Below, in pieces: positions 545 to 46,300 of a stretch of 64,000 nucleotides of DNA. This DNA is from Podarcis melisellensis (Eukaryota). The stretch lies in NCBI GenBank assembly GCA_964234715.1, contig OZ174281.1; one strand, given 5' to 3'. The position numbers and the translations under genes are program-made. A model generated the notes under the pieces. That model saw only the letters and a list, made by a program, of their open reading frames with translations, was not told the DNA's origin and did no database searches. The stretch's first letter is position 1, and every line of letters starts with the position of its first letter.

Positions 545-1040
545 CATTCTGTTTGCTATGGACACTAACCAGATGCTTCTTGGAAGCTCACAGCAAGGGC
601 ACAAAGGCAAGAGCCCTCCCTCAATGTTGTTCAGCAAATGCGATTCAGCAAATGCTATTCAGAGTTATATTGCCTCTGAACACAAACGTTCCATGTTGCC
701 ACCATAACCAACAGCCATCGATTGCTTCATCCTCCATGAATCTGTCTGATCTGCTTTTAAAGGCATCTAGGCTAGTGGCCATCACTACTTCTGGAAGCAG
801 GAATTCAACAAATCATGCATTGTATAAAATGGTATCTCCTTTTTCTATGTCCTCAAACTACTGCCTGTGAGTCTCATGGGATGATCCCAAAGCTCCAGAT
901 GTATGAGAAGGGGGGGGGGAACTTCTCTGTATCCACTTTCCCCCCACCTCACTTTGTTCTAAACTGTAAAAGCCACAAATATTTCATCCTCTTCTTCCAA
1001 GCCCCTGATCATTTGGGCTGCCCTTCTCTGCACCCTTTTG
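545..1040 (-). mobile_element. Old CR1-like LINE fragment
   Basis: Similar to 4670-4960 (TAAAGCTATCTAAGCTGGTGGCCAT segment), with decayed CR1 3' sequence. Confidence 0.55.
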
Positions 1041-1241
1041 TTATCTGAACTGAACTAGTATTTGTTTCCTGGAACGATTATATTGGAGAACATTAATCTG
1101 ACCAGGGAGTGTGTGTGTGCCACAGTCTTCTTTCAGGTGTGTATGTGACTGTAAACCACAAGTCAGGAGAGGGCTTGAGGGATCTACTTTATGTTTTACT
1201 AGACCCAGATAGCCACTGATTGGAGTCAAGGACAAATGACA

Positions 1242-1341
1242 TGTTGTTGTTGTTTAGTCGTGACCAACTCTTTGTGACCCCATGGACCAGAGCACGCCAG
1301 GCACTCCTGACTTCAACTGCCTCCCACAGTTTGGTCAAACT
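1242..1341 (-). mobile_element. BovB (RTE) LINE 3' fragment
   Basis: Minus strand reads GCCTGGCGTGCTCTGGTCCATGGGGTCAC...ACGACTAAAC(AAC)n, the BovB 3' end. Confidence 0.8.
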
Positions 1342-2071
1342 TTGAATTAAAAGTACTAAGTGTGGTATTCAACTAAATAACTGCAAGTGGCACAGGTTCC
1401 ACTTGCCCAATGGGATTTCCTTTCCTCTCCTCCCCCTGTGCTCTCCCAAAATCTGCTTGAGAGGATTGGGGAAATCCCCAGAACAGATTTAAGGGGTGAG
1501 CAGTGGGAGGAAAGAGGCTGAACCTTCTGCTGTGCAAGGAGAAATTCTGCCACTAATGGAATATTCCGTTTAGCACTGTTTTGAGTACAGCCCATGGGGC
1601 CTTTGAACACAGGGACTTCTACTGAGTGACAGATCTGCGTTTTGCTCACAGTTCTTCCATAAGCAAAATTTATTTCTGGTTACCCCAAGTTTTCTTCACT
1701 TCAGCAGCTTAATTTGGTGTGGATGTGCCATTTTGTTGTTGCTACTGTCAAACAACTGGGAGCCAGACATCTTTGGTGATCTGCTGCAAATCACCTAAAG
1801 ATCCATCAGTACATTCCAGGCTATATTCTTCTCACCCCTATCATATGTGGCTCCATCTTTGGAATGGTCGTGGTTCAGTGGGAGAGAACAGGTTTTGCAT
1901 GAAAAGCTTCTAGGTTCATCCCCAGCCTTCTTCGTAAGGCTTGGGGACCACCTGTGCAGAGCTGCTGCCTGTCAGTGTCAACAACACTGAGCTAGATGAG
2001 CCAATGACTTGGGGCTTTCTTTTGCATTTGGAAGGTTGCCAGAGGTTATTGAAAAGCTTAGGGTGGCTTAC

Positions 2072-2372
2072 CTTGCATTTTCTCCATATTGCCGGGTTTG
2101 TGAAACTGTTTTACTAATTGGCATCTTACTGCATGCCTCATTTAGGTTTTAAGTCCTAAGAACTTCTAATGATGTTACCAAGGGCATGTCTTTGTAGCTT
2201 CTGTGATGAAAGGTTTCCAAGCTCATCACCAATTAGTAACTAGAAACAGCCATACTCCTAAACTGATGTGGCCATTAATTCAAATATTCCTATATTCCAG
2301 GTGAAGGTTGTTGGATATTCACCAGCAGACCAATAGCTATGAATGCTGTGAACAATGACATTTAGATTCTAC
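2072..2372 (-). other. Candidate host-gene exon, possibly 5' UTR plus coding start
   Basis: Acceptor cctcttttcag and donor CAAG|gtaagc. ATGs at 2124 (MPISKTVSQTRQYGENA, phase 2) and 2141 (phase 1) run open into the donor. Confidence 0.3.
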
Positions 2373-2885
2373 CTGAAAAGAGGTTCATTTTTTGTGCGGC
2401 AAAAAGGGTAGTTTCTAGAAAAGGCACGGCTGTCATACTCTAATAGTTCTTGATATGGGGTCCACTGGGATAGCTATTTTATTTTCTCTTGGTTGGGTGA
2501 AGACTTGCCCCTCCACAAGTGGAAGGGCTCCTTCCATTTATGGAAGGAAGCAGAGCCCAAGGTAGACCCATGGGAAGAAGGATGCTCAAATCCTAGCTCC
2601 TTTCTGCCTTTCTTGGATGGCTCTGGGCAAGTCTCATCAGTTGCCCATATGCAAAATGCGAATGCTAAGGATGTCCCTCCCATGGTGAGCTGTGAAAATG
2701 TGTACTATGTGTGAAATGAATTTTATATTACTAATTACTTAAATGCAAATGAGGAGTAAAGTTAATAGCACAAACAGAACATTTGCTAGCTTTATTTCTT
2801 CTTTCAGTTTTGCTGCCTTGTTTTTTCTTTTAATGGTTTGTATTCATTTTATAGTATGAGCCAAAGTGTGGTATAGAAATGAATG

Positions 2886-2925
2886 AAACAAACAAACAAA
2901 CAAACAAATAAACAAACAAACAAAA
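2886..2925. repeat. (AAAC)n microsatellite
   Basis: Read directly from the sequence. Confidence 0.95.
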
Positions 2926-4669
2926 TTGTGTCAAAGAAAAGCACATGTGGAGTGTGTAAGATTTTGAATAGTGCTTTTTATGAATGATTTGGGCGGTGGT
3001 GGGGGCAACGATATATAATTCAACAAGACATAAAGCAACTTCTGCGGATATTCAGTTTCAAAGCAGCTTGATTTGGATAAGAAACTTTCACATGCATAAA
3101 ACCACATAGCGGGCGAGAATACAGTTTCCAAATACTGTAGTCCTCACGAGTGAGTTTTATTTCACAGAATAAGCTGTACGTAGCACTGAGAAGCTGAAGA
3201 TGTGATACAATTTCAGTGTTGGATTTCTTCCATTCACACTTGGTCATCAAAATATGATGGACTGGATTCAGGTCTACCACACATACTTAGAGTAGGCCCA
3301 TTGAAATCAAGAAGATTTATGTTTTAATGCATCTATGCTTAAGTATGACTAAGCATAGACTGGCCCCAACCCCGTGTCATTAGCGTGAAGCAGATGTGAA
3401 CACAACCTTCTTGGTCAAAGTTACGCAGCAGAAAAGGTCTAATTTCTAATATGGCACAGGACTAAATGGGAACTTGTGTACCTTCTTTATTTAAATGAAG
3501 CAGAATATCCTGATGAATTCAACCTCAGAATGAGGATGCAAAAACCTCCTTTTATGCAAATATATTGCTGCTTTTCTTCCATCCCATTCATTTTCCAGGC
3601 ATGAGTCAGGACACACACATTTACTCCTATTTATTTTTCTCCTGCATTTCATTTCTATATTTTGGAAATTGATAAATTACTTAAATTATTTGCTTATCAG
3701 CCTGAGTTTTAAAAATGAGGTGCATTTTTCACGTCTCCTTCTCTACCAAAGGCTTAAATGAATAAATCAATTTTGGACTAATGTATGATTCCGCCTTATC
3801 CAGAATGAATCACTAAAACCGAAACAACATATTAACCTCTTGGAACCAGAGGTTGGGATTAGCATATTAGTATTTAAGCGCTGTGAGTTTCAGTCCCTCA
3901 GACCCTTGGGATTAAACCGTAGAACATTTGTTACCCAGTATGTGTGAAAGCATTGGCTGCACATGTTTACAAGCATATGCAGCAGCATGCGGACTGTATG
4001 CCTACAGAGTCTGGGCCACTGCTCTTCGGCTCTCAACATTCTCAGCCCCAAAACAGTGTTTCCCATACTTTTTGATGCCTTGGGTCTTTACACCACCCTG
4101 AAATAAAAGGAAGTGTAGTTCATGTTTGTCCTAAAAAATTTACATATAGTATTTTTCTAAATTAGCTCCCAGAACAAAGGGCAGGCATTTGGGGGGCTAG
4201 GTCAGTTAGTATCTGGTCTGTACTAGCTCCTTGCACCCTGCTCTTCTTTTTGCCCAATCAGCCAAGGACTCTAATGTAAGAGCATGTAAGAGCATGTTTT
4301 GTAATGTAAGAGCATGTTTTGGGATTTCTCCCATGCTTAGAAGCCTGGAAATATGAAATAAAAACAGATTCACATTGAAATGGGTAACTGGGAAAACAAG
4401 CAACACTGATATCTCTGATACTTTGCTCTAGCTATCCCTGAGTTTCTGGACTTCATAGTTACAAAGAACGACTTGAAAATTAAGGCTGAGGTTTGATGAC
4501 ATCTTAGCAGCTGTAAGGAGGTGCCACGTTGATCAACAAGCCATCAGGGGTTGGAAAGACAAATACAAACTGATACGGTTTTCATCCTTCATTATGATTC
4601 CCATCTCATTTGCAGATAATTTGTATTTTCTTTTAGAACTGGATGCACATACTCCTGGCTATCAAACTG

Positions 4670-9869: not shown

Positions 9870-12800
9870 ATGGCTTCACTTGTGCCTCTACTGCCGTTTG
9901 CGCCAGCCTCTGAATCATGGGACTCCTACCTCGCTCGGTTCGACTGCTACCTCCAAGCCAACGAGCTGACAGCAGTATCAAAGGATCGGAAGCAGGGCCT
10001 ATTCCTCAGCCTCTGTGGGCCTGAGGTGTTTGAGACGGCCCGAGCATTGGTTGCGCCTGAAGCAGTCCAGGCAACACCATGGGACACGATCCAAGAGAAG
10101 CTCCGCAACCACTATGCACCAAAGCCGTCCAAGATTGCTGCCCGCCATGCGTTCTACCACCGGAACCAGGCAGAGGGGGAGTCAATCAACAACTACACCA
10201 CCGCCCTGCGACAGGCTGCAATGCACTGTGAGTTCCGAGACTTAGACGATGCCCTGATGGATCGAATCGTCTGCGGGGTCCGGGACATCCATCTGCAACG
10301 GCGTCTCCTAGCCAAGCCAGACCTCACGCTACAGAAAGCCATTGAGGAGGCTGTGGCCTCAGAAGCTGCTGAACGCTCCGCCCAGGAGATCCGCAAGTCC
10401 AGCAGCCCGCGTCTTGCTAGGGAGCCAGTTCCGGTGCATCATGAAGAGGCCAGCAGTGATGAGGCATCCTCCAGTGAAGACGATGATGTGCACCAGACAA
10501 AGCGGGAGCGCAGGAAGTTCCAACAGAAGTCCAAGGGCCAACCGGAATGTGCCGGCTGCGGAGGCAACCATTCCCGTGCCAAGTGTCGATTCAGAGACGC
10601 CATCTGTAGGAAGTGTTCCAGAAGGGGCCACATCGCTAAGGTCTGCCGATCGGCTCCGTCTGACACCCCCCCTTCATCGACTCGCAAGTCCAAGTCTTCA
10701 CTCCAGTCTGCCAAGGAAAGTTGTTTCGCTCTCACCAACTGCCGCTGCCCGTCTGGAACCACGATTGGCCAAACCGACTCGCCTACGCGACGCAAGCTGA
10801 ACGTCACGGTGCTCATTGAAGGAGCTCCATGTGACATGGAGATCGACACCGGGTCTGCCCTGTCCATCGTGTCATGGAGCACCATCAAAAGACTGGTACC
10901 CAGAGTGTCCAAGAGGCAACTCAACTCTCACCGCGTACACCTGAGAGACTACCAGGGAAACGACATTCCCGTGGTAGGCGTTGGCCGGTTCCGGATCGCC
11001 TTCAAGGATTTTTCGGGCCTGCTCCGGTTGGTGGTGGTCGAAGGTCAGCGGCCAAGCCTCCTAGGGCTAGACTGGTTTGATGCCCTCGGCCTGGAAGTCA
11101 CCGGCATCAACTGCATCTCTAACGCAGAGACTGAGCGTCTGGTCAAAGACTTTGCCGAGGTTTTTGACGGCACATTGGGGCAATATACAGGTACGCCCAT
11201 CTCCTTTAGCCTTGATCCACAAGCCGCCCCCATCAAGCTAAAGCCACGCCGGGTTCCCTTTGCTCTCAAGGCTAAGGTGGACGAACAACTGGACAAACTG
11301 ATTGCCCAAGGAGTTTTGGAGCCGGTTGCCCACGCCAAGTGGGAAACCCCCATCGTCACGCCTGTCAAGCCAGACGGGTCGGTGAGAATCTGCGCTGACT
11401 ACAAGTGCACGATCAACAAGGCACTTCAGCAGCACGCTTATCCGGTTCCTGTTGTCCAACACCTGCTGCATTCCCTGGGTGAGGGTAAGGTCTTCGCTAA
11501 GCTGGACCTTGCCCAAGCATATCAACAACTGCCAGTTGATGATGCCACTGCTGAAGCCCAGACGATCGTCACCCACCGGGGGGCATTCCGTTGCCGCCGG
11601 TTGCAGTTCGGGGTGAGTGTGGCTCCTGGAATCTTCCAAAGCCTTATGGAGCGTCTCCTGCAAGGGCTTCCGGGCGTGGTACCATATTTTGATGACGTCT
11701 TGGTGTCTGCAGACTCACACCAGCAGCTGTTCGAGCGCCTCCGTGCCGTGCTGACCAGGTTCCAAGAGGCCGGGCTCAAGGTAAAGAGGGAGAAGTGCCA
11801 GATCGCCGTTCCACAGGTAGAGTTCCTGGGCTATCTTATCGATGCCTCCGGCCTTCACCCAACCACATCCAAGATCCGCGCTATCCAGCAGGCCCCCACC
11901 CCAAAGAACAAAACGGAGTTGCAGGCATTCCTGGGGCTGCTGAACTTTTATAACATGTTCCTGCCCCACAAAGCCACAGTGGCTGAGCCTCTTCACCGAC
12001 TCCTTAGCACTAAGACGCCTTGGGCCTGGGGTCATCGGGAGACGGCGGCCTTCAACGCGGTCAAGGCTCTCCTTTCTTCAGACAGTGTGCTGGTACAGTA
12101 CAGTGAATCCAGGCCGCTGGTCCTTGCCTGCGACGCCTCACCTTTTGGCATCGGTGCTGTCCTTAGTCACCGTTTTCCAGATGGAAGAGAAGCACCGCTC
12201 GCCTACTTTTCCAGGACACTATCTCCAACGGAACGGAATTACAGCCAGCTCGACAAGGAGGCATTGGCACTTGTGGCTGGAGTGAAGAGGTTCCATGAAT
12301 ACCTCTATGGCAGGACTTTTGACCTCATCACTGACCACAAGCCACTCCTGGGCCTCCTCGCCGGTGATCGTCCAACTCCACCGGTCCTCTCGCCACGCAT
12401 GCTGCGATGGACTGTTTTCCTGGCTGCCTACCACTACCGGCTCATCCATCGCCCGGGGAAATCGATGGGCCATGCCGACGCCCTCAGCCGTTGCCCTCTT
12501 CCAGCATTTGTGGAAGACCCGGCTCCAGCTTCATCGCTCCTTCTGATTGAGGATCTTCCGGCAGCGCCTGTATCAGCTACCACTGTGGCCTCCGCGTCTG
12601 CCCAGGATCGCACCATCAGCCGGGTGCTCAACTGGGTGTGGAGGGGGTGGCCACAAGGGCCTTTTGCATCGGAGTTCCAGCCCTTCGCAACCAGACAACA
12701 TGAACTCTCAGCTCATCGCGGCTGTCTGCTGTGGGGAGACCGCGTCGTGATTCCCCAGGGACTCCGTCAGCGCGTCCTGGAGGCTCTGCACGTTGGCCAC

Positions 12801-13601
12801 CCGGGAATTGTCAAAATGAAGGCATTGGCTCGGTGTTACGTCTGGTGGCCTAATATGGACGATGCCATCACTGCCTGGGTGTCCGCCTGTCAAGCGTGCC
12901 AAGAGTCGAGGCCTGCACCACCGGCAGCTAAGGGACACACCTGGGAGACGCCAAAGACACCCTGGTCGAGGGTGCACATCGATCTGGCTGGCCCCTTTCA
13001 CGGCCGGACCTTTATGGTAGTGGTGGACGCCTATTCCAAATGGCTGGAGGTCGCCCTGATGCCCTCCACCACTACCGAAGCTGTCATCCGGGTGCTGCGA
13101 GGCCTGTTTGCAACGCATGGGTGTCCTGATGTCCTTGTCTCTGACAACGGACCGCAGTTCACGTCAGGCACCTTTGAGCGGTATCTTTTGGGACTGGGCA
13201 TCCGCCATGCCCTAATGGCACCCTTTCATCCATCCAGCAACGGGCAAGCGGAAAGAATGGTGCGCTCGGCAAAAGAGGCACTGGCGCGCCTGGATCGGGG
13301 AGACTGGCATGAGCGGGTCGCCGAATACTTGTTCGTGCAACACATCACCCCTCATGCGGCCACAGGGAGGAGTCCTGCTGAACTGCTTATGGGCCGCCGC
13401 CTCAGGTCACCACTCGACCGGCTACACCCGGACTTTGCCGTGGCTGAACCCCCAGGCTGTGCCAACGCGCCACGGTCATTTGTCCCAGGAAACCAGGTCT
13501 TTGCCCGGAACTATGTGGGGGACATTCCTTGGGTGCCAGCCACAGTAGTGGGAGTCACTGGACCTCGCTCGTACCAGGTGGCACTCGAAGATGGACGCTA
13601 G
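9870..13601 (+). CDS. gag-pol: Gypsy gag-pol polyprotein (Gag, two Zn knuckles, aspartic protease, RT, RNase H, integrase)
   Basis: 1243-aa ORF. Knuckles CAGCGGNHSRAKC and CRKCSRRGHIAKVC; protease IDTGS; RT LDLAQAY...YFDD; RNase H ACDAS...ERNYSQLDKEALA...TDHKPL; integrase HVGH...CQAC, HIDLAGP, SDNGPQF, GQAERMV. Confidence 0.96.
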   Translation: MASLVPLLPFAPASESWDSYLARFDCYLQANELTAVSKDRKQGLFLSLCGPEVFETARALVAPEAVQATPWDTIQEKLRNHYAPKPSKIAARHAFYHRNQAEGESINNYTTALRQAAMHCEFRDLDDALMDRIVCGVRDIHLQRRLLAKPDLTLQKAIEEAVASEAAERSAQEIRKSSSPRLAREPVPVHHEEASSDEASSSEDDDVHQTKRERRKFQQKSKGQPECAGCGGNHSRAKCRFRDAICRKCSRRGHIAKVCRSAPSDTPPSSTRKSKSSLQSAKESCFALTNCRCPSGTTIGQTDSPTRRKLNVTVLIEGAPCDMEIDTGSALSIVSWSTIKRLVPRVSKRQLNSHRVHLRDYQGNDIPVVGVGRFRIAFKDFSGLLRLVVVEGQRPSLLGLDWFDALGLEVTGINCISNAETERLVKDFAEVFDGTLGQYTGTPISFSLDPQAAPIKLKPRRVPFALKAKVDEQLDKLIAQGVLEPVAHAKWETPIVTPVKPDGSVRICADYKCTINKALQQHAYPVPVVQHLLHSLGEGKVFAKLDLAQAYQQLPVDDATAEAQTIVTHRGAFRCRRLQFGVSVAPGIFQSLMERLLQGLPGVVPYFDDVLVSADSHQQLFERLRAVLTRFQEAGLKVKREKCQIAVPQVEFLGYLIDASGLHPTTSKIRAIQQAPTPKNKTELQAFLGLLNFYNMFLPHKATVAEPLHRLLSTKTPWAWGHRETAAFNAVKALLSSDSVLVQYSESRPLVLACDASPFGIGAVLSHRFPDGREAPLAYFSRTLSPTERNYSQLDKEALALVAGVKRFHEYLYGRTFDLITDHKPLLGLLAGDRPTPPVLSPRMLRWTVFLAAYHYRLIHRPGKSMGHADALSRCPLPAFVEDPAPASSLLLIEDLPAAPVSATTVASASAQDRTISRVLNWVWRGWPQGPFASEFQPFATRQHELSAHRGCLLWGDRVVIPQGLRQRVLEALHVGHPGIVKMKALARCYVWWPNMDDAITAWVSACQACQESRPAPPAAKGHTWETPKTPWSRVHIDLAGPFHGRTFMVVVDAYSKWLEVALMPSTTTEAVIRVLRGLFATHGCPDVLVSDNGPQFTSGTFERYLLGLGIRHALMAPFHPSSNGQAERMVRSAKEALARLDRGDWHERVAEYLFVQHITPHAATGRSPAELLMGRRLRSPLDRLHPDFAVAEPPGCANAPRSFVPGNQVFARNYVGDIPWVPATVVGVTGPRSYQVALEDGR

Positions 13602-37258: not shown

Positions 37259-39395
37259 GTGTATACTGCAGACATGTGTCATGTCCAATTCTGCAAGAAA
37301 GAGATATTTCTTCTTTTTAAGACAGCTGAAAACAGTTAGAAAAAGAGATAACCACAGTACATACAGTAATCTGAGGGTCATCTCATGAAATAAAAGCTTT
37401 TCTGGGTATTGCTGATTGTAGAGAATATTTATAAGTTCCTTTCTCTCCATGTGGATGCTTTTTGTTTTAAACCCTGCCTATTTTCCCAACTGGCAAGAAA
37501 AAGAAAAAGACATGTTGAATACCTTAGGAAGCAGTAGCTTGGTTCTCTATCTCCAACCCCAAAATCCTTTGGGATTTTAGTTTTTTTTTTATTAAAAAAA
37601 CAACACTGATTCCTGCACCATCCAGGATTTAAATCAGAACTGGGGCGATCACTAGCAGAGTAGGTTCCCTGTTTCAGTCATCCCTCAACACCTAAAAGAC
37701 ACAGCCCATGTAAAATGTAAACGGAATTTCAGTGATGTAAAAGACTAAAAGAAATATGGCAACCAGGTAATCTGTTGTTTGTTATTAGGATTTATCTAGA
37801 AAACACTTAATATATCCTGTTTTCCAAATGTGCCGCCCCCACACTGAAGAATGGGAAAGCGGAGCAGGGCTCCATGCTTGGCCTTCTCTTCCCCGCATGA
37901 CATCAGCAGGGAGGAAGTGGAGCGGGGCCACAGGATATGGGGGGAGGCCATCCCCCTCCTTGAAAAATTTAGGGGACCCTCAGCCCCCATCACTTGTCAC
38001 ACCTGTCGTTTTCCCACACATGTGCAGCCCAGTCCCACACATGTACTCAGTGGGGCTTATTCCCTGACAGTGCCTGATGAAGACATGTGGCCCTAAATGG
38101 TTTCAAGTTTCAGAACCCATAGTCTGAAGCTGGCCACTGGTGCTGTTTGACAGCTGATGCACACCAGATCTAATAAAATTTTGGTATAGTTATTTCCACA
38201 CAGATTTATAAATACAATATGACATATAATTGGACAGTTTTATAGAATGCTTTTGTCATTATCAGAATATTTTCTGCTTTAGTGTCTGTTTTCTTTATTT
38301 TTTTAATCAATTATATAAAACTTGAAATTCAGTTTTTAAAAAAGTATTTATAGTGCCCTTAAAATCTGAGGCCCTAAAATGTAGCTTACTAAGTTTGTAC
38401 ATAAATCAGACACTGTCCCCAGATAAATGTGCATAGGATTTCAGCCTTACATTCTCAGCTTTTGTATAACCACTGTAAGATGCCCCTCAGCCATTCTACT
38501 TCGGCAAGATGCTCTAGTCTGCTTATCATCCAGCCCCCCTGATGCAGCCGCTCAATGCACACCCCTCTCCTCCCAAGCCTTTCCTGAGGGGACTCTCATG
38601 CCCCACACAAGAGGTTTTACAGGGATTGAGGAGGGTTACAATAACGGGGTGGGATATCTCCAGTGCATAAGCAGACTCCCACTTTTGGAATTCTGACTCC
38701 AACCCACCGTCTTGCAAGATTGTTTTTCGTAGAAATAAGCTTCTGTGATTTCTTTTATGAAGAAGCCCTTTGAATATCTACTATAAAGCTAAATCAATCC
38801 CTTGATTCCAGTTTGTCACTTATAGCGGGGGTGGTGGGTGGTGAAAAGAGGATGTGGAATACTTGAATAAAAGAGCTCACCAAGCTACACAGGGTTGTCT
38901 GCATCATTCCTCTGTGTAAATTAACTGTGCCACCTGTACTGACCCTTCAAATCCTTCACAATTCCTCTGGGCAGGCAGCCAGAGATCAAGGCAAGCTGAG
39001 CAGAGGTGCTGTGCAGTTCAGCTGTACAACTGATCCACAATAAAAAGAAAGACACATCCTGCATTTGTAGTCCCAGAAAGACCCGACTTTTGAATTCATT
39101 CAGAATTTGATTGTTTTTTTTAGGGGGTAGCAAACTTAAGAGTTGTGCTATATAACCAGTAAAATCACTTTATTTATCTCTTACTGGAATTTATGCTTCA
39201 GGTGGAGAATCAAATGTCTGAACACACTGCAATGTAAAAATACCCCCAAAATGCATTAATGTACATACGGAACTAGCCTGTCACAGTTCTAGGTTAGCAT
39301 TCTCTCTAACATGTTGGTTTTGTATCTGAACAGAGGTGTTGTTCTTTACATTGGGTCAGATATTTAATCTTTACCAAGTCTGAAATGGTTCATTC

Positions 39396-39890
39396 TGTTA
39401 TTCTAAAGCAGCAATGCGGCAGCAAGCAAAGGCTATAGCAGCCAAGACTGCTGCTTGTGGCTGGAAAGCCAAACAGGAAGTTTGTGACTGTTGCCATGGG
39501 AACAAAGGGGCAGTCCAATCTGTACTGAGCACCGGATGTTAGCTCAGTGGGTTTGTCACATGACCTGTACAGGATGTACATGGGTGGAGCTGGAGTTTCT
39601 CTCTGTCTGTTGAAGAGAGCAGACATGTTTACTGTATGACTGCTTAAAGACACAAATAAAGACATGTAGATACGTTTCTATATGTGTCTGATTCCCCTCC
39701 CTGGGGATATGCAGGGAGGAGGAGAAGGAGGAGGAGCAGTTGGTGTGTTTTCCTCACAGCCTGAGGAAAATCGCCGGAACGGACCTCGTATGTTTTATCC
39801 TGCCGGGAGTCGCCGGAGGGAGGTCTAAGGAATTCAGCCGGTGCCTGAACAGATAGGCACATACCTCTGAGACGGGCTAGAATTCCAACA
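39396..39890 (+). repeat. 5' LTR of Copia element
   Basis: TGTTATTC...TTCCAACA, with AATAAA at 39655-39660. Confidence 0.96.
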
Positions 39891-39891
39891 G

Positions 39892-39901
39892 TGGTAGCAG
39901 A
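39892..39901 (+). promoter_or_regulatory. Primer binding site, initiator tRNA-Met type
   Basis: TGGTAGCAGA one base after the LTR, matching the complement of the animal tRNAi-Met 3' end, as is common in Copia elements. Confidence 0.8.
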
Positions 39902-40360
39902 CGCCGGTTGCTGTTTTCATCGACCTCTGCATCAAGAAGTGGCCTCCATGGAAGCCTGAGGTGAGAAGGCTGATTCTCTGCAGCCAGAAGCTGACCAGAA
40001 GAATCTGAAAGCCAAGCTACGGAGCCCAGGTATGAGTTTTTCGGGCTTAGAAGAGTGAATGCAGATTGATTCATTCTCTGCTTCGAGGGAGGAACGTTTG
40101 GGAACACAGCTCCGGTCAAAAGAGAAACCGCATTCCAAACATTCCTGTGGTTTTTCCTGTCCAAGGAAAAGGAATGCTGTTGCTTAGCAACGAAGGCCAT
40201 GCCTCAGAGAGGAGAAGTGAAAGTTAAAATGGAATGTTTTGACTACACAGTCTGAAGAGCTCTTGGAAAATTCCAACGCAGCCAGCGTTGAGAGCTGCCA
40301 GGTGGCACAGAGTGTAAACAAGCCAGCTATTGGATTTTAGAGGCTTGTGTTTGAGAGTCA

Positions 40361-43048
40361 ATGCAAGGACTCAAAATGGATGCCAAGAAGGGCAGTTTGC
40401 CTTCTCCGCCCCTCCTGACCAGTGACAATTATGCATCTTGGTCTATTAAGATGAAGGCCCTGCTGCAGAATCAGAGACTGTTTGGGGTGATTGAGAACCC
40501 CATTCCAGCAGCACCAACGCGTGCCTGGGAGTCACAGGATGTGAAGGCCAGAACTGCTATAATTCTGTGCGTGTCAGATTCGCAGTTGATCCACATACAA
40601 GATTTACTGCACGCGAGAGATGTTTGGGACACGCTGAGAAGGACACATCAGAGAGATGCAGGTTCTTCAGCGTTGCTGTATTTTGAGAAGCTGACCAACC
40701 TGAGGCTTGCGCCTGATGGAGATGTTCAAGCGCACCTGACAGAAATGAAATTTCTGCGTCAACAGATGGTGGAACGCAATTTCCGTCTGCAGGAGGAAGT
40801 GTTTTGCTTCATGGTGATCAACAGCCTGAATCGGACTTACAAAACAGTTGCTAGTCAGCTGGGGTCTCTCCCAGCAGCGGATCTCACTTCGGAGAGGGTC
40901 TTTGCCGTGGTTCTTTGTGAACATGACAGACTTGCCGCCCTGGAAGTGAAGGACAGGGGGAGACAAGAACGGAGTTCTAACACCCCTACTGCTGAAGCTA
41001 CTGGAGAAAATGCTGTAGCTTTAAACGTTGTCCGATGCTACAATTGTGACCAGACTGGGCATCTTCAGCGGTACTGCAAGAAGCCACGTCGGAACAGAGG
41101 AGCTAAGGCGAGCTCCGCAAAGTCTGAGGCGTCAGACAAAGGTCACACCAAGCCAAAGGCAAAGACTGCAAAAGCTTTGATGTCGCTAAAAGCCACACCA
41201 AAAGCGAGGAACTTCTTTGTCCTAGATACTGGAGCCACAGTTCACATGACAGGACACAGAGGACTATTTTCTACGTTTGAGAAGCAAAGCTTCGCTGTGC
41301 AACTAGCCAACGGTCAAGAGCTGGAAGCGACCGGAATTGGGACTGTGTATCTTAAAAGTCTGAACTTGACTATAAGCAATGTTTATTTGGTTCCAGAGTT
41401 GAAGTTCAATCTGCTCAGCGTTTCGCAGATTGCCAAGAAGGGACTAAAACTGTCCTATGATGATCAGAACTGCGAGATCTACAAAGATGGAGAGTTGTAT
41501 CTTTCTGCCAAAGAGAAAGATGGACTGTATTTGTTGACTTTTGATCAAAGTGATTACATGAAATGTAATTCTTGTGATTCTAACATGATCTCTTTTACAG
41601 GTGTAGCCAAGAAGAACGTCAAGCAAGTGACCTCGAGGGTCAACAAGGCATTTCAGCGGGTGTATGCTGATGTGATTGGTCCTTTAGCACCATCTAGAGG
41701 CAATGCAAAGTATTACCTTATATGTGTTGATTCTTTTACAGGTTTTGTCTGGATTTATCTTTTGGAGAGACCGAAAGAAGCCTTAGAAAGGTTTAAAGAG
41801 TTTTGTGACAAGGTTAAAAATATGCATGATGCTGACATAGATTGTCTTTGCACAGATGAGAAGCCAATTTTTCTTTTACAGGAGTTCCAGAGGTTCCTGA
41901 AGAAGAAAGGGATAAGACACAAAGTGGCTAGTTCCGAAGAAGCTTGGAACAAATGTGTTTGTGTTAGGGTGAACAAAGAATTGCAAAAGGGAATGCATGC
42001 GCAATTGCTAAGTTCACATCTGCCACATGAGTACTGGGCTGAATCGCTAATGTCATATTGTTATACGTGGTTGAGAAAGTTTTCAAAAGAGTTGGGAAGT
42101 TCTCCTTTTGAGAAACTGTTCCACAGAAAACCTTCAGTTGCCCATTTCAAGGTTTTTGGGTCTCATGTGAGAACAGAAGCTCCAGGTGGAGTAAAGGATG
42201 CCAGAGGCATTTTTGTGGGTTATGAAAAGGGTCTCTACAGAGTAATTTTGTCTGAATCTGGTCAGGTGATTCTCACAAAATGTCTAGAGAGTGCTCCTGA
42301 ACAGGAGAGAGTGATTGTTCACACATTTCCCACAGGTGATGATGATTCTGATGATGATGATGATGAGTTTGATCTTATTGAGTTCAGTAGTACTGATGAT
42401 GACAGCGATAGCTCAGACAGCTCAGTTGTCACAGTCATTAAGAGGAAATCTCACATAATTACTAGACCCTCAGAAGAGGAGGATGAACCACTGATTAAGC
42501 TTAGTACTGGTTCTCCAGAGAGTTCAGAGGCTGAACCAGAAATCAAAGAAGAGCAGCACCTCTTACGTAGGTCTGAGAGAGCAACGAAGGGTGTACCACC
42601 CAAGAGGTATTCACAAGAGTTTGCTAACTTATGTGTTGCTGTTGTAAACGACCAAGGTCAGATTGAAGCTGTGTCTGAGTCAGAGACAAAGGCACAACAG
42701 AGAGTTGTTAACCAAGGTAATGCAGAAGCACTCATTCCTTGGAAGTCACACAACCAGAGAGGTACATTGGTAAAACCAGTGGCGGGTAGTTCCAAGGGTG
42801 GAACTGAAACAACAGGGGAGTGTTATAAGTATAACAACTGTTTGTTTTCTTCTCTGGATGACGCTTTGCTCGCGGCACGCATTGATACTTTAGGGGGAGT
42901 ATGTTATTCTAAAGCAGCAATGCGGCAGCAAGCAAAGGCTATAGCAGCCAAGACTGCTGCTTGTGGCTGGAAAGCCAAACAGGAAGTTTGTGACTGTTGC
43001 CATGGGAACAAAGGGGCAGTCCAATCTGTACTGAGCACCGGATGTTAG
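40361..43048 (+). CDS. Copia polyprotein: Gag, CCHC knuckle, protease, degenerate integrase, acidic linker; no RT
   Basis: 895-aa uninterrupted ORF. Copia Gag N-terminus (LTSDNYASWSIKMKALL); CYNCDQTGHLQRYC at 41036-41077; protease VLDTGATVHM (D at 41225) and NVYLVPELKFNLLSV; integrase-like VYADVIGP, CVDSFT, LCTDE, LPHEYWAE, SPFEKLFHRKPSVAHFKVFGS, GIFVGY. No YVDD or other RT motifs. Confidence 0.92.
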   Translation: MQGLKMDAKKGSLPSPPLLTSDNYASWSIKMKALLQNQRLFGVIENPIPAAPTRAWESQDVKARTAIILCVSDSQLIHIQDLLHARDVWDTLRRTHQRDAGSSALLYFEKLTNLRLAPDGDVQAHLTEMKFLRQQMVERNFRLQEEVFCFMVINSLNRTYKTVASQLGSLPAADLTSERVFAVVLCEHDRLAALEVKDRGRQERSSNTPTAEATGENAVALNVVRCYNCDQTGHLQRYCKKPRRNRGAKASSAKSEASDKGHTKPKAKTAKALMSLKATPKARNFFVLDTGATVHMTGHRGLFSTFEKQSFAVQLANGQELEATGIGTVYLKSLNLTISNVYLVPELKFNLLSVSQIAKKGLKLSYDDQNCEIYKDGELYLSAKEKDGLYLLTFDQSDYMKCNSCDSNMISFTGVAKKNVKQVTSRVNKAFQRVYADVIGPLAPSRGNAKYYLICVDSFTGFVWIYLLERPKEALERFKEFCDKVKNMHDADIDCLCTDEKPIFLLQEFQRFLKKKGIRHKVASSEEAWNKCVCVRVNKELQKGMHAQLLSSHLPHEYWAESLMSYCYTWLRKFSKELGSSPFEKLFHRKPSVAHFKVFGSHVRTEAPGGVKDARGIFVGYEKGLYRVILSESGQVILTKCLESAPEQERVIVHTFPTGDDDSDDDDDEFDLIEFSSTDDDSDSSDSSVVTVIKRKSHIITRPSEEEDEPLIKLSTGSPESSEAEPEIKEEQHLLRRSERATKGVPPKRYSQEFANLCVAVVNDQGQIEAVSESETKAQQRVVNQGNAEALIPWKSHNQRGTLVKPVAGSSKGGTETTGECYKYNNCLFSSLDDALLAARIDTLGGVCYSKAAMRQQAKAIAAKTAACGWKAKQEVCDCCHGNKGAVQSVLSTGC
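42892..42901 (+). promoter_or_regulatory. Polypurine tract of Copia element
   Basis: AGGGGGAGTA immediately before the 3' LTR. Confidence 0.85.
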
Positions 43049-43396
43049 CTCAGTGGGTTTGTCACATGACCTGTACAGGATGTACATGGGTGGAGCTGGA
43101 GTTTCTCTCTGTCTGTTGAAGAGAGCAGACATGTTTACTGTATGACTGCTTAAAGACACAAATAAAGACATGTAGATACGTTTCTATATGTGTCTGATTC
43201 CCCTCCCTGGGGATATGCAGGGAGGAGGAGAAGGAGGAGGAGCAGTTGGTGTGTTTTCCTCACAGCCTGAGGAAAATCGCCGGAACGGACCTCGTATGTT
43301 TTATCCTGCCGGGAGTCGCCGGAGGGAGGTCTAAGGAATTCAGCCGGTGCCTGAACAGATAGGCACATACCTCTGAGACGGGCTAGAATTCCAACA
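42902..43396 (+). repeat. 3' LTR of Copia element
   Basis: Identical to 39396-39890 and followed by TSD CATTC. Confidence 0.96.
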
Positions 43397-46300
43397 CATT
43401 CTAGGTATATCACACAACTGCTAATCACACTGGTCAACTCTTAATGAACCACCCATCACGTGTTAACATTACTTTGCGGTCGGTGAATTCACATGTTCTG
43501 AAATATACGTTTTTGTTATGTTTGTCAATGTGCAAAATTAATTTATGTATTTTCCTGAAATTATTGAGCATGACCATCAAACTCACTTCATTTAAACTCA
43601 GTTCCAGAAGGTTAGTCATGCTGCTGTTGTGAAAAAATCCCTGACAGGGTTGTGAGCAACCATAAAGAGTAATGAACTTATTGTAGAATAAACTTTCATG
43701 GGTGAGAGCCCACTTAGGGCAGAAGCAGAGTTCTCATCCACAAGAGTTTATCTCACAATACCTTTCCTTTTGTCTTCAAGGTGACACAGAACTCTTTATT
43801 GATTCAAAACCGGAGTACACCCATCCTATCCATCTTTACCAAAGTTCTTGAAACTTATTTTTGAAACAGAGTCAGCATCTTTCTTTTCCTGATGCTACAA
43901 GGCTATGATGATCTGTGATTTTTTTAAAAAGTCATATAATCAGGGCTGGCCCAAGGTGAAGGCTGCACGAGGTGAAGAACAAGGCAGCACCATTCCTATT
44001 TTATGTAGAGAAACCTCCTGTATAGGCAGTTGAATCTCACTTCAACACTGGCGGACTTTGGGCTCTCAATTTTCAGCAGCGCCCTGTGCAATGCTAAAAC
44101 TCACCCACCCACTTGCCTCTTGTGCTCTGTTCTACAGCATTGTTGTGGCACCTCCTGCAGTGCGGCTGAACTGGTCACACTACCTTAAAACTCTAAGTGT
44201 GCTTCTGATTCTTCCTTTCTTCCTTTGCTGCCACAGCTTGAATCCAAGCTGCAGCTATAGTGGAAAAGAAGAACAGGGAGCACAGTCCAAGTATAATTTG
44301 GAACATGCTTGTCATTTGGCATACAGAGTGACAGAAAAAGGCACAAAAGGATAAAAAGTGCACTGGTTTCTTATTATAAGCTGGAAAGGAAAAACTGGAA
44401 CATACTTAAAGTGTGCTCTTGATCATTCTTTTTCAGATTAACCCCATGGGTTTGCCTGTCCTGCACCAGACTTCATATGTTGTCCAGCAATAAACTGGTA
44501 GGTGTATTTTGGACCAAACCACAGCATGGCTCAAACAGAAAGGCCCGGCAGACCGAATTAGGCTTCTGGCCCAGACAGAGGCTCTCCACCACTGAGCTCG
44601 ACAATATGATTAACTCACATTACGAATGCAGAAATGCTACTAACACTCTACTGGAAAATTCTTCAAAATAGGTGGTAAACAACAATGGCAATGGCATACC
44701 AGCTGCTTGTTATTCATTACAAGGTCTCCAGAAACACCCAGTCCAGCAATATGAAATGTCAAGGACAGGAAAACAAAAAGCCTGTCTAAATGGAACTGCT
44801 TCCCCTCAGGGCAAACCTACTTCAATTGGAGCCAATTGTGTTAATGTGTGCATTTCCATCATGATTAAATATATGCTGTTATTTCATGAACTTATTTACA
44901 TTAGTATTGAAGGTGGGCAGAAATCAGCCAGTGACAGGCATTTTGTTTCAAAATGCAATCCTATTTCTTCTTCTTTTTATTGTTTTGGACCTATTCTGTT
45001 TATTGCATTGATGAAAATTTATAACATTCTGGAACAGTGTAGTAGCTAAGCATGTGAGCAGGGAATCCCTAGTTTTATCTTGTGGTAGCCATTCAACAGA
45101 CAAACCTAGGCAACTTGAGCTCCCTAGCTTCTCTACAATGTCTACAATATGGATTATAAAATGCCATCCTAACATACAGGGATTAATATTTTAGAAAATG
45201 TTAAACCCCCAGATGGCTCCAAACAAATGTGAAGTGTTATACTCATATTACTAGGTTATCCATAAAATGCAGAGGGAGATCAAGAAAACTGAAAACTCAC
45301 CTCTGAGGCCCACAGAAGTGTTCACGTGTTACATGCAACAAGTGCAAAGGGTTGAGTTGTGCATATAAAAAATGAACAATATTTCCCACCAACACTTGTA
45401 CATGTGTAGAGACAGCTTATACTTGTGTTCATTGTAATACAGTATGTGAACAAGCCTTGTGTGGCATTTTCAGTGTGCCTATCTGTAATGTAGCATATCT
45501 ATTGAACAACATCAGAATCAAACTATGTATGGACAATCAGAACACAATTCCCTACCATTGAAAGATGTCAAATGTATTAATTGTAAGTAAAAAAAACCCT
45601 GCTCCACTCACAGACGGCAAGGGCAATAAAATTCAATTCAGTTCAGTTCTGAAGTGATGCTGCTTGAGCCCTGTGGTTTACAGATCTATATACTGTAATA
45701 TATTCACTGTGCATATTGCTTTACAATTGCTTCTTGGCTCAGCAAGGAAATAAAGGTAAATGTTTAGTCAAGGTCACCTCCTCATCTGTGGGATCTCCTA
45801 CTCAAAACTCCCATTTATCTAGGTTCCTTGCTCCCTCATCCTTTGTGACCAGAATTTGCTAGCTAGAGAAGCAAATTAGCATTTTATTTTTTAACTTATT
45901 GTATGCTTGTTTGGTGACTTTTGTGAAACTGTTTATAATTTGCAAAATAAAGATGGGAGTGTGTAAGAGATACTGTCTTTTCATGAGCCAGATTCTTGCA
46001 CACTGTTTGCAATGAAACCAGGTAGATGATGAATCTACATGCACAGCTGAAATGGTAGTTTATGTAATAAAGGGGCTTTGTGTGTGGTGACCAGATCCAT
46101 GAAGCCACAGACTGGTGTGATGACCAATCTGAGAAAGAAATCACAGATACTGGGGAAGATCATAAGCTTACAATCTTCTGGCTGAATCCAGATTTTCCAA
46201 GACACAAACCCTCTACAGTCATTCCCCTCATGTGCAAACTCTACATGTGAGAAAGGAATAGTGAGTATAGTAAGATCTGCTTCCCATGCTAGCACCTTGT

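Follow-up and report, generated by a model that had tools for sequence, protein, structure and literature searches.

TR-GAG elements of plants are described (PMC4350172) as non-autonomous elements with long terminal repeats (LTRs), a primer-binding site, a polypurine tract and an open reading frame (ORF) for Gag, and without reverse transcriptase (RT). In the mouse element IAP 1-delta-1 a deletion makes a fusion ORF; the element is non-autonomous, causes most new insertions, and its own product helps in cis (PMC6466679). The Copia elements of squamates are numerous and have been classed by their RT and RNase H as members of the Mtanga clade (PMC11889832). Here we describe an element in a 64,000-nt stretch of Podarcis melisellensis DNA (contig OZ174281.1; "the window"), whose positions 39396-43396 on the + strand hold a complete Ty1/Copia-type LTR element of 4,001 bp. 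It is, in all likelihood, a young and polymorphic member of a non-autonomous Ty1/Copia lineage of lacertids that is moved by borrowed enzymes.

Results

The element contains a single ORF of 895 codons (40361..43048, + strand, as for all features below) that would encode Gag, a CCHC knuckle, a protease, an inactive integrase, an acidic linker, a remnant of RT and RNase H and, at its end, 49 LTR-encoded codons. Read in the two remaining forward frames, the same stretch has 54 and 76 stops. The Gag capsid domain (Retrotran_gag_2, residues 31-191, 40451..40933, Pfam 1.6e-22) is followed by a zinc knuckle (residues 226-239, 41036..41077) with an intact C-x2-C-x4-H-x4-C pattern and a weak Pfam zf-CCHC match; its C, C, H and C do not vary in an alignment of Copia polyproteins. 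The aspartic protease barrel (Pol_BBD, residues 286-361, 41216..41443, Pfam 1.7e-20) carries the DTG triad at residues 289-291 (41225-41233), a position occupied by DSG in the copy from Zootoca introduced below. DUF4219 was also matched in the ORF by Pfam. The integrase portion consists of an N-terminal zinc-finger remnant (41561..41575) with the CxxC half only, a catalytic-core fold with an incomplete active site (41645..42115; rve match of 23.7 bits, cut-off 32.6) and a C-terminal SH3-like domain (residues 587-639, 42119..42277; weak Pfam SH3_retrovirus match). An acidic, serine-rich linker of about residues 651-734 (42311..42562) separates it from the tail.

No match to RVT_2 or to any RNase H family was obtained with Pfam in the 895-aa ORF, even at E up to 1, and roughly 430 residues or 1.3 kb are missing, a loss that takes away the RT core and leaves very little of RNase H. 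Instead, the tail (42563..42901) holds the linker motif between integrase and RT (residues 735-750), what is left of an RT N-terminus in degenerate form (to about residue 809), a probable remnant of an RNase H strand (residues 817-829) and, overlapping the polypurine tract, about 18 further codons. BLASTP matched the first part to the start of RT in the RT-bearing Copia protein P0002 (residues 806-847, E = 1e-4) and the second part to an RNase H strand of the same protein (residues 1157-1216, E = 1e-4). The tail of the Zootoca protein matches P0002 at residues 796-877 (E = 3e-6). An initial MAFFT alignment had placed the whole tail on the RT N-terminus; this assignment was dropped, as BLASTP gave a better fit of the last part to the RNase H strand. 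The RNase H strand remnant is graded as probable only, because this part is weak in the Zootoca tail (E = 0.26). In many copies from two coded organisms, A and C, the tail has a length variant of about 9 extra bases, in frame, after the linker motif at window position 42628-42631.

A preliminary description, made from the letters of the window and its ORFs, had proposed an RT-less Copia element with an 895-aa ORF containing Gag, a CCHC knuckle and a DTG protease, and it had expected RVT_2 to be absent. ORF calling, Pfam and motif inspection bear out both statements. It had also held that the frame reaches the polypurine tract about 100 codons past the linker motif. The distance of about 100 codons stands, and the sequence in between is an RT and RNase H remnant rather than random sequence. 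The frame does not end there: it reads through the tract, and its stop lies 147 nt into U3, so that the last 49 codons come from the 3' LTR. The order Gag, protease, integrase is that of Copia, and neither RT and RNase H nor an integrase with complete HHCC and DDE motifs is present. The element is thus Copia-derived and not an autonomous member of the superfamily.

The signals of an LTR element, in turn, are all in place and were recovered as previously described. The 5' LTR (39396..39890) and 3' LTR (42902..43396) are 495 bp each, end in TGTTA...CAACA and are 100% identical over 495 bp in a pairwise comparison; the first 147 nt of the 3' LTR supply the last 49 ORF codons and the stop. A perfect 5-bp target-site duplication, CATTC, flanks the element (left copy 39391..39395, right copy 43397..43401). 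The primer-binding site TGGTAGCAGA (39892..39901) starts one base past the 5' LTR; its 10 nt are complementary to the 3' end of initiator tRNA-Met (tRNA-iMet). The polypurine tract AGGGGGAGTA (42892..42901) lies inside the ORF and adjoins the 3' LTR. TG...CA LTR ends, 5-bp duplication, tRNA-iMet primer site and polypurine tract are those expected of the superfamily. An AATAAA at 39655-39660 inside the 5' LTR is a possible polyadenylation signal. The untranslated leader (39891..40360) is the least conserved part of the element in comparison with the P. lilfordi copy L004 described below (59-75% identity). Primer sites have the same start but are longer in relatives, with 23 nt in L004 (L004:3610-3632) and 18 nt in the Zootoca locus L002 (L002:4677-4715) compared with 10 in the window copy, and that of L002 is in two parts, its second block GGTTTCGATCC following 7 nt downstream.

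The insertion is recent and polymorphic within the labelled species. In public reads, contigs of run X1 span both joints between flank and LTR with zero mismatches, while a 2,311-nt contig of run X4, which has the same organism label as X1 (organism A) and comes from a different sample and study, joins 39390 to 43397. It omits 4,006 bases, equal to the 4,001 of the element plus one 5-bp duplication, and represents the empty site. A check for insertion polymorphism, suggested at the outset, was thereby answered by both filled joints and an empty site. At the rates commonly assumed for squamates, identical LTRs would place the insertion well within the last few million years. Summed word depth in X1 is about 1e5 for the element, with 66-78 for the single-copy flanks, and in X4 about 1.5e4, with 10.7 for the flanks. 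Near-identical parts of the element occur in 20 runs from eight coded organisms and nine studies. The window itself contains no Ns and no second copy or LTR of the family in its 64 kb.

Internal deletions are common in LTR elements, and the RT-less structure could reflect a one-off event, in which a single copy lost its RT after insertion, or the assembly collapsed, while close relatives are complete. Several rare deleted variants of the family in run X1 speak for such events, as does the sister-lineage member L003, which carries an unrelated RT deletion. The same tail and junction, however, recur in other copies. A Podarcis lilfordi protein, P0001, compared as protein only, is 78% identical and shares the tail, the read-through of the polypurine tract and the LTR-encoded C-terminus. 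A second P. lilfordi locus, L004, has 83% nucleotide identity to the window element in a collinear alignment that covers element positions 931-3981 and includes the tail, the polypurine tract and LTR sequence. Between the two LTRs of L004 2/458 positions differ (99.56% identity), the 3' LTR is truncated by 11 nt and borders directly on part of another copy, and the frame is broken between Gag and protease; we compared the two ORF pieces separately, left the frame as found and built no family consensus. A contig from organism C covers tail, polypurine tract and LTR with 3 differences from the window element.

A search of 1.8 billion representative proteins extended the family to Zootoca vivipara (assembly GCA_963506605.1), where the protein P0020 is encoded by an intact ORF of 869 aa and has 42% protein identity over query residues 16-841. 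Its locus, L002, is a 3,471-bp element that agrees with the window element in its LTR ends and in the type of its tail. Its LTRs are 290 bp long and have 1 mismatch, and 45 nt resembling leader sequence come after the 3' LTR. The closest RT-bearing protein among the same representatives is only 34-39% identical. In addition, word depth is roughly even through the tail. Since the LTRs of the window element are identical, only a very recent event could have deleted the RT after insertion, but copies diverge from one another by 42-78% in the tail. A one-off loss is therefore already contradicted, and we give it next to no credence. The preliminary description had named near-identical complete relatives of a single RT-less copy as the finding that would speak against it, and had suggested a search for copies with the same deletion junction. 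The closest RT-bearing relative reached 34%, and tail and junction were found again in P0001, L004 and L002. Its proposal that the RT-less form itself was recently copied agrees with the polymorphic insertion and with the family-wide tail in the P. lilfordi and Zootoca copies.

A quick maximum-likelihood tree with 30 Copia polyproteins places the window element inside this group. The RT-less copies form one clade (approximate likelihood ratio support, SH-aLRT, 100), and its sister (100) is the RT-bearing pair P0002/P0021. Together with the shared deletions, the tree points to a single origin of the RT-less form, which would have been followed by long diversification. The identity between L004 and the window element is a mosaic, with 91-94% over the linker, the tail, the polypurine tract and the first 100 nt of U3 (window 42196-42995) and 59-89% elsewhere, over the LTR body, the leader and Gag to integrase. 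This suggests either recombination between subfamilies or cis-acting constraint.

Two further contigs in the Logan collection carry RT-less or shortened relatives. L003 (L003:292-3074, run ERR14657248) is a member of the sister lineage with an intact HHCC and DDE integrase, and its RT deletion is a different one, with P0002 residues 831 to 1281 missing; judged by this junction, it is an independent RT loss. L005 (L005:481-1771, run ERR14042333) is a Gag-protease-integrase fragment with 45% identity in Gag. It, too, is shortened between protease and integrase core, and it might represent a third subfamily without RT.

The polyprotein is maintained by selection. The ratio of non-synonymous to synonymous substitution rates (dN/dS) against L004 is 0.11 in Gag (Fisher p = 4e-20), 0.17 in the protease (p = 3e-9), 0.31 in the integrase core (p = 7e-6) and 0.10 in the SH3-like domain (p = 5e-6). 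In the comparison with Zootoca, Gag, protease, integrase core and tail each have a lower proportion of non-synonymous differences (pN) than of synonymous ones (pS), with p from 3e-7 to 1e-19; in the tail pN is 0.32 and pS 0.67 (p = 3e-7). A per-domain analysis of this kind had been recommended in the preliminary description, and its range of 0.1-0.3 over Gag, protease, integrase core and SH3-like domain indicates that Gag, protease and the integrase fold are under purifying selection. The zinc-finger remnant (dN/dS 2.5 over 30 codons) and the acidic linker (0.75) gave no significant deviation, and the region of the zinc-finger remnant is apparently evolving neutrally. Among the best-supported variant positions of the ORF in public reads, 20/34 are synonymous, where about 22-30% would be expected (p = 5e-4).

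These data bear on a reading in which the element is a passive passenger of the LARD or ETn kind, moved by its cis signals only, with an ORF that is a leftover without a role. Non-coding ETn and VL30 elements are mobilised efficiently (PMC6466679), and the near-neutral linker and zinc-finger remnant as well as the broken Gag-protease frame of L004 would be at home in a passive element. Against this stand the highly significant ratios of 0.1-0.3 in four domains, the excess of synonymous changes among family variants, and the fact that ORFs of 869 and 895 codons are intact at only 42% identity while the other frames have 54-76 stops. We consider a passive element improbable. The evidence supports the view that the ORF is open owing to selection and not to youth. 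From purifying selection on Gag, protease and the integrase fold it would follow that the polyprotein aids the element's own success.

The integrase is predicted to be catalytically dead and to have retained its fold. Of the catalytic residues, D437 and D499 are retained, while the glutamate is replaced by V535 (41963-41965). An alignment with RT-bearing Copia polyproteins shows a deletion of about 45 residues that takes in the HH half of the zinc finger. The change from glutamate to valine and the loss of the HH region are common to all three RT-less copies (window, L004 and P0020), and in the Zootoca copy both catalytic aspartates are changed too. An AlphaFold2 model of residues 388-650, whose underlying alignment contained active integrases, has a mean confidence (pLDDT) of 82, with values >90 over the integrase core and the SH3-like domain and disorder in the zinc-finger remnant. 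It matches the integrases of prototype foamy virus (PFV) and Rous sarcoma virus (RSV) with E about 1e-14, the PFV core entry 3dlr at 2.0 Å. Given these substitutions and deletions, the element would almost certainly be unable to integrate by itself. With a valine in place of the catalytic glutamate and the HH half deleted, an integrase must be borrowed. Borrowing in trans had been proposed before, and the loss of catalytic residues upholds it for an element whose own integrase is dead; the description needed correction in that an integrase-shaped domain is still present.

An element that can neither carry out reverse transcription nor remove its RNA template, and almost certainly cannot integrate, would take RT, RNase H and integrase from an autonomous Copia. 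All cis signals that such a helper would need are kept and are conserved across the family, namely the LTR ends TGTTA...CAACA, the tRNA-iMet primer site and the polypurine tract. The 3' junction of GGGGGAGTA and TGTTA is common to the window element and to the RT-bearing locus L001, and at the 5' junction both the RT-less family and the RT-bearing sister lineage have CAACA, followed one or two bases on by TGGTAGCAGA. A search for an autonomous Copia with matching ends had been advised in the preliminary description. LTR ends, primer site and polypurine tract are shared with the sister lineage; the relatives found are only 34-39% identical, and no helper was identified among them.

We infer trans-mobilisation, the roles of the proteins and the existence of a helper from this combination, and propose the following course. 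An ancestor would have lost the RT core and, almost entirely, RNase H, and its integrase would have been stripped of the catalytic glutamate and of the HH half of the zinc finger. Its descendants would be transcribed from their own LTR, and their own polyprotein would be made and cut by their own protease. Their Gag, perhaps with the dead integrase as an adaptor, would then capture the RNA that encoded them, a step that would parallel the cis effect of mouse IAP 1-delta-1. RT, RNase H and active integrase would be obtained from particles of an autonomous Copia in the same cell, and the helper integrase would insert the complementary DNA with a 5-bp duplication.

Several observations weigh against this proposal or soften its support. 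The dN/dS values come from three copies, of which L004 is itself broken, and synonymous sites are saturated in the comparison with Zootoca. The low synonymous divergence of the tail against L004 (dS 0.10) could be caused by recombination or by constraint and, in view of the mosaic identity, is not readable as selection. As its alignment held active integrases, the AlphaFold2 model shows compatibility with the fold and is not proof of it. The abundance suggested by the word depths, of an order of magnitude of about a thousand copy-equivalents, is crude, word depth not being equal to copy number. In the runs presumed to be RNA (X15-X20) one contig spans the LTR into the primer site, which DNA would give as well. 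Most directly, with the RT and RNase H half of P0002 as query, no lacertid protein was found, the nearest named relative being one from the lizard Elgaria with 57% over half the region, and the nearest RT-bearing relatives of the family, at 34-39% identity, include none that was identified as the source of the enzymes.

Two other roles for the polyprotein deserve comparison with this proposal. In the first, the RT-less family would supply Gag and protease and a Gag-less, Pol-only Copia would supply Pol, neither of the two being autonomous. Such partnerships exist in plants, where the Gag-defective BARE2 uses the Gag of its partner BARE1. Nothing connects the lizard family with a Pol-only Copia, and we rate a partnership of this kind as unlikely. 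In the second, dead integrase and Gag would poison the particles of the helper, either as a weapon against a competitor or as a brake on copy number, and selection would act on that effect. A dead, well-folded integrase under purifying selection does resemble a dominant-negative subunit, and for Ty1 of yeast a Gag-derived inhibitor, p22, is known. The young, polymorphic and abundant copies, in contrast, are those of a family that is itself copied efficiently, and the retention of the protease and of all cis signals is left unexplained by interference alone, which we hold to be highly unlikely as the target of selection.

Mobilisation by borrowed enzymes with the help of the family's own particle proteins thus remains the preferred reading. 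A bolder version of it would see in the family an ancient "parasite of a parasite", older than the split between the Podarcis-type and Zootoca-type subfamilies. The family would in that case owe its survival to the dead integrase, which as a selected pseudo-enzyme would act as an adaptor and attach the RNA-protein complex of the element to the particles or the intasome of the helper, perhaps as part of a split system with Pol-only Copias. This version is possible, if rather doubtful on the present evidence. If it were true, the adaptor would enable a lineage without RT to be copied more than autonomous Copias and to rise to the most active LTR families of lacertids.

Pieces of the family have also entered gene annotations. 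In the gene models of P0001, P0003 (P. muralis) and P0024, which go by the name "vomeronasal type-2 receptor 26-like", receptor exons are spliced to segments of the family's Gag, protease and integrase. Such chimeras probably arose as artefacts of annotation where the family had inserted in these genes or close to them. The insertion in the window was considered as the locus of the P0003 model and rejected, the vomeronasal-receptor gene of that model being absent from the window. Elsewhere in the window, an intact ORF of 1,243 codons (9870-13601, +) encodes a Ty3/Gypsy-type polyprotein with matches to RVT_1, RT_RNaseH_2, Integrase_H2C2 and rve; its Gag and aspartic protease matches are weak.

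Discussion

The lineage described here is a vertebrate Copia lineage that would have discarded its polymerase and disabled its integrase, in which a long polyprotein is kept under selection across lizard genera, and which is still inserting. In the open literature we found no prior description of RT-less coding Copias in reptiles; subscription papers and Repbase lay outside the search. The family would fill a gap between non-coding passengers such as LARD, TRIM and ETn and the Gag-only elements of plants. It raises the questions of what a retroelement must make for itself to be copied preferentially, what role a dead integrase may have, and how helper and parasite co-evolve. Copia surveys based on RT and RNase H have a blind spot for such lineages, and pieces of the family have been absorbed into Podarcis vomeronasal-receptor models by gene annotation. 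On the practical side, the polymorphic insertions might be of use as markers in population studies of wall lizards.

Compared with the non-coding passengers, the likeness lies in the signals. LARD, TRIM, ETn and VL30 elements also need helper enzymes and have conserved LTR ends, a primer site and a polypurine tract. They have no conserved ORF, whereas the lizard family has one of 870-895 codons that is under purifying selection.

The autonomous squamate Copias of the Mtanga clade and the RT-bearing sister lineage represented by P0002/L001 share with the RT-less family the order Gag-CCHC-protease-integrase, the single ORF, the tRNA-iMet site, the TGTTA...CAACA ends and the polypurine tract GGGGGAGTA. 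They differ in possessing an HHCC finger, a full DDE triad, RVT_2 and RNase H, all of which the RT-less family lacks. Because clade assignment in Copia surveys uses RT and RNase H trees, RT-less lineages are invisible to them.

The TR-GAG elements of plants resemble the lizard family in combining LTRs, a primer site, a polypurine tract and a capsid ORF of their own with the absence of RT. They encode Gag only and are under 4 kb, while the lizard family, at 4.0 kb, adds a protease, an inactive integrase fold and an RT and RNase H remnant.

Mouse IAP 1-delta-1 is the closest model for how the lizard family probably works, since in both an internal deletion has led to an in-frame fusion ORF in the form that proliferates. 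IAP 1-delta-1, however, belongs to the class II endogenous retroviruses; it is young, occurs in mice only, and has lost part of gag and pol in a deletion that leaves RT in place. In the lizard family the whole RT core is gone, the integrase is predicted to be dead, and protein identity between two genera is down to 42%. Protein-coding non-autonomous LTR elements as such are already known; what is unusual here is an integrase that appears dead and yet conserved, together with the time depth, the abundance and the current activity of the family.

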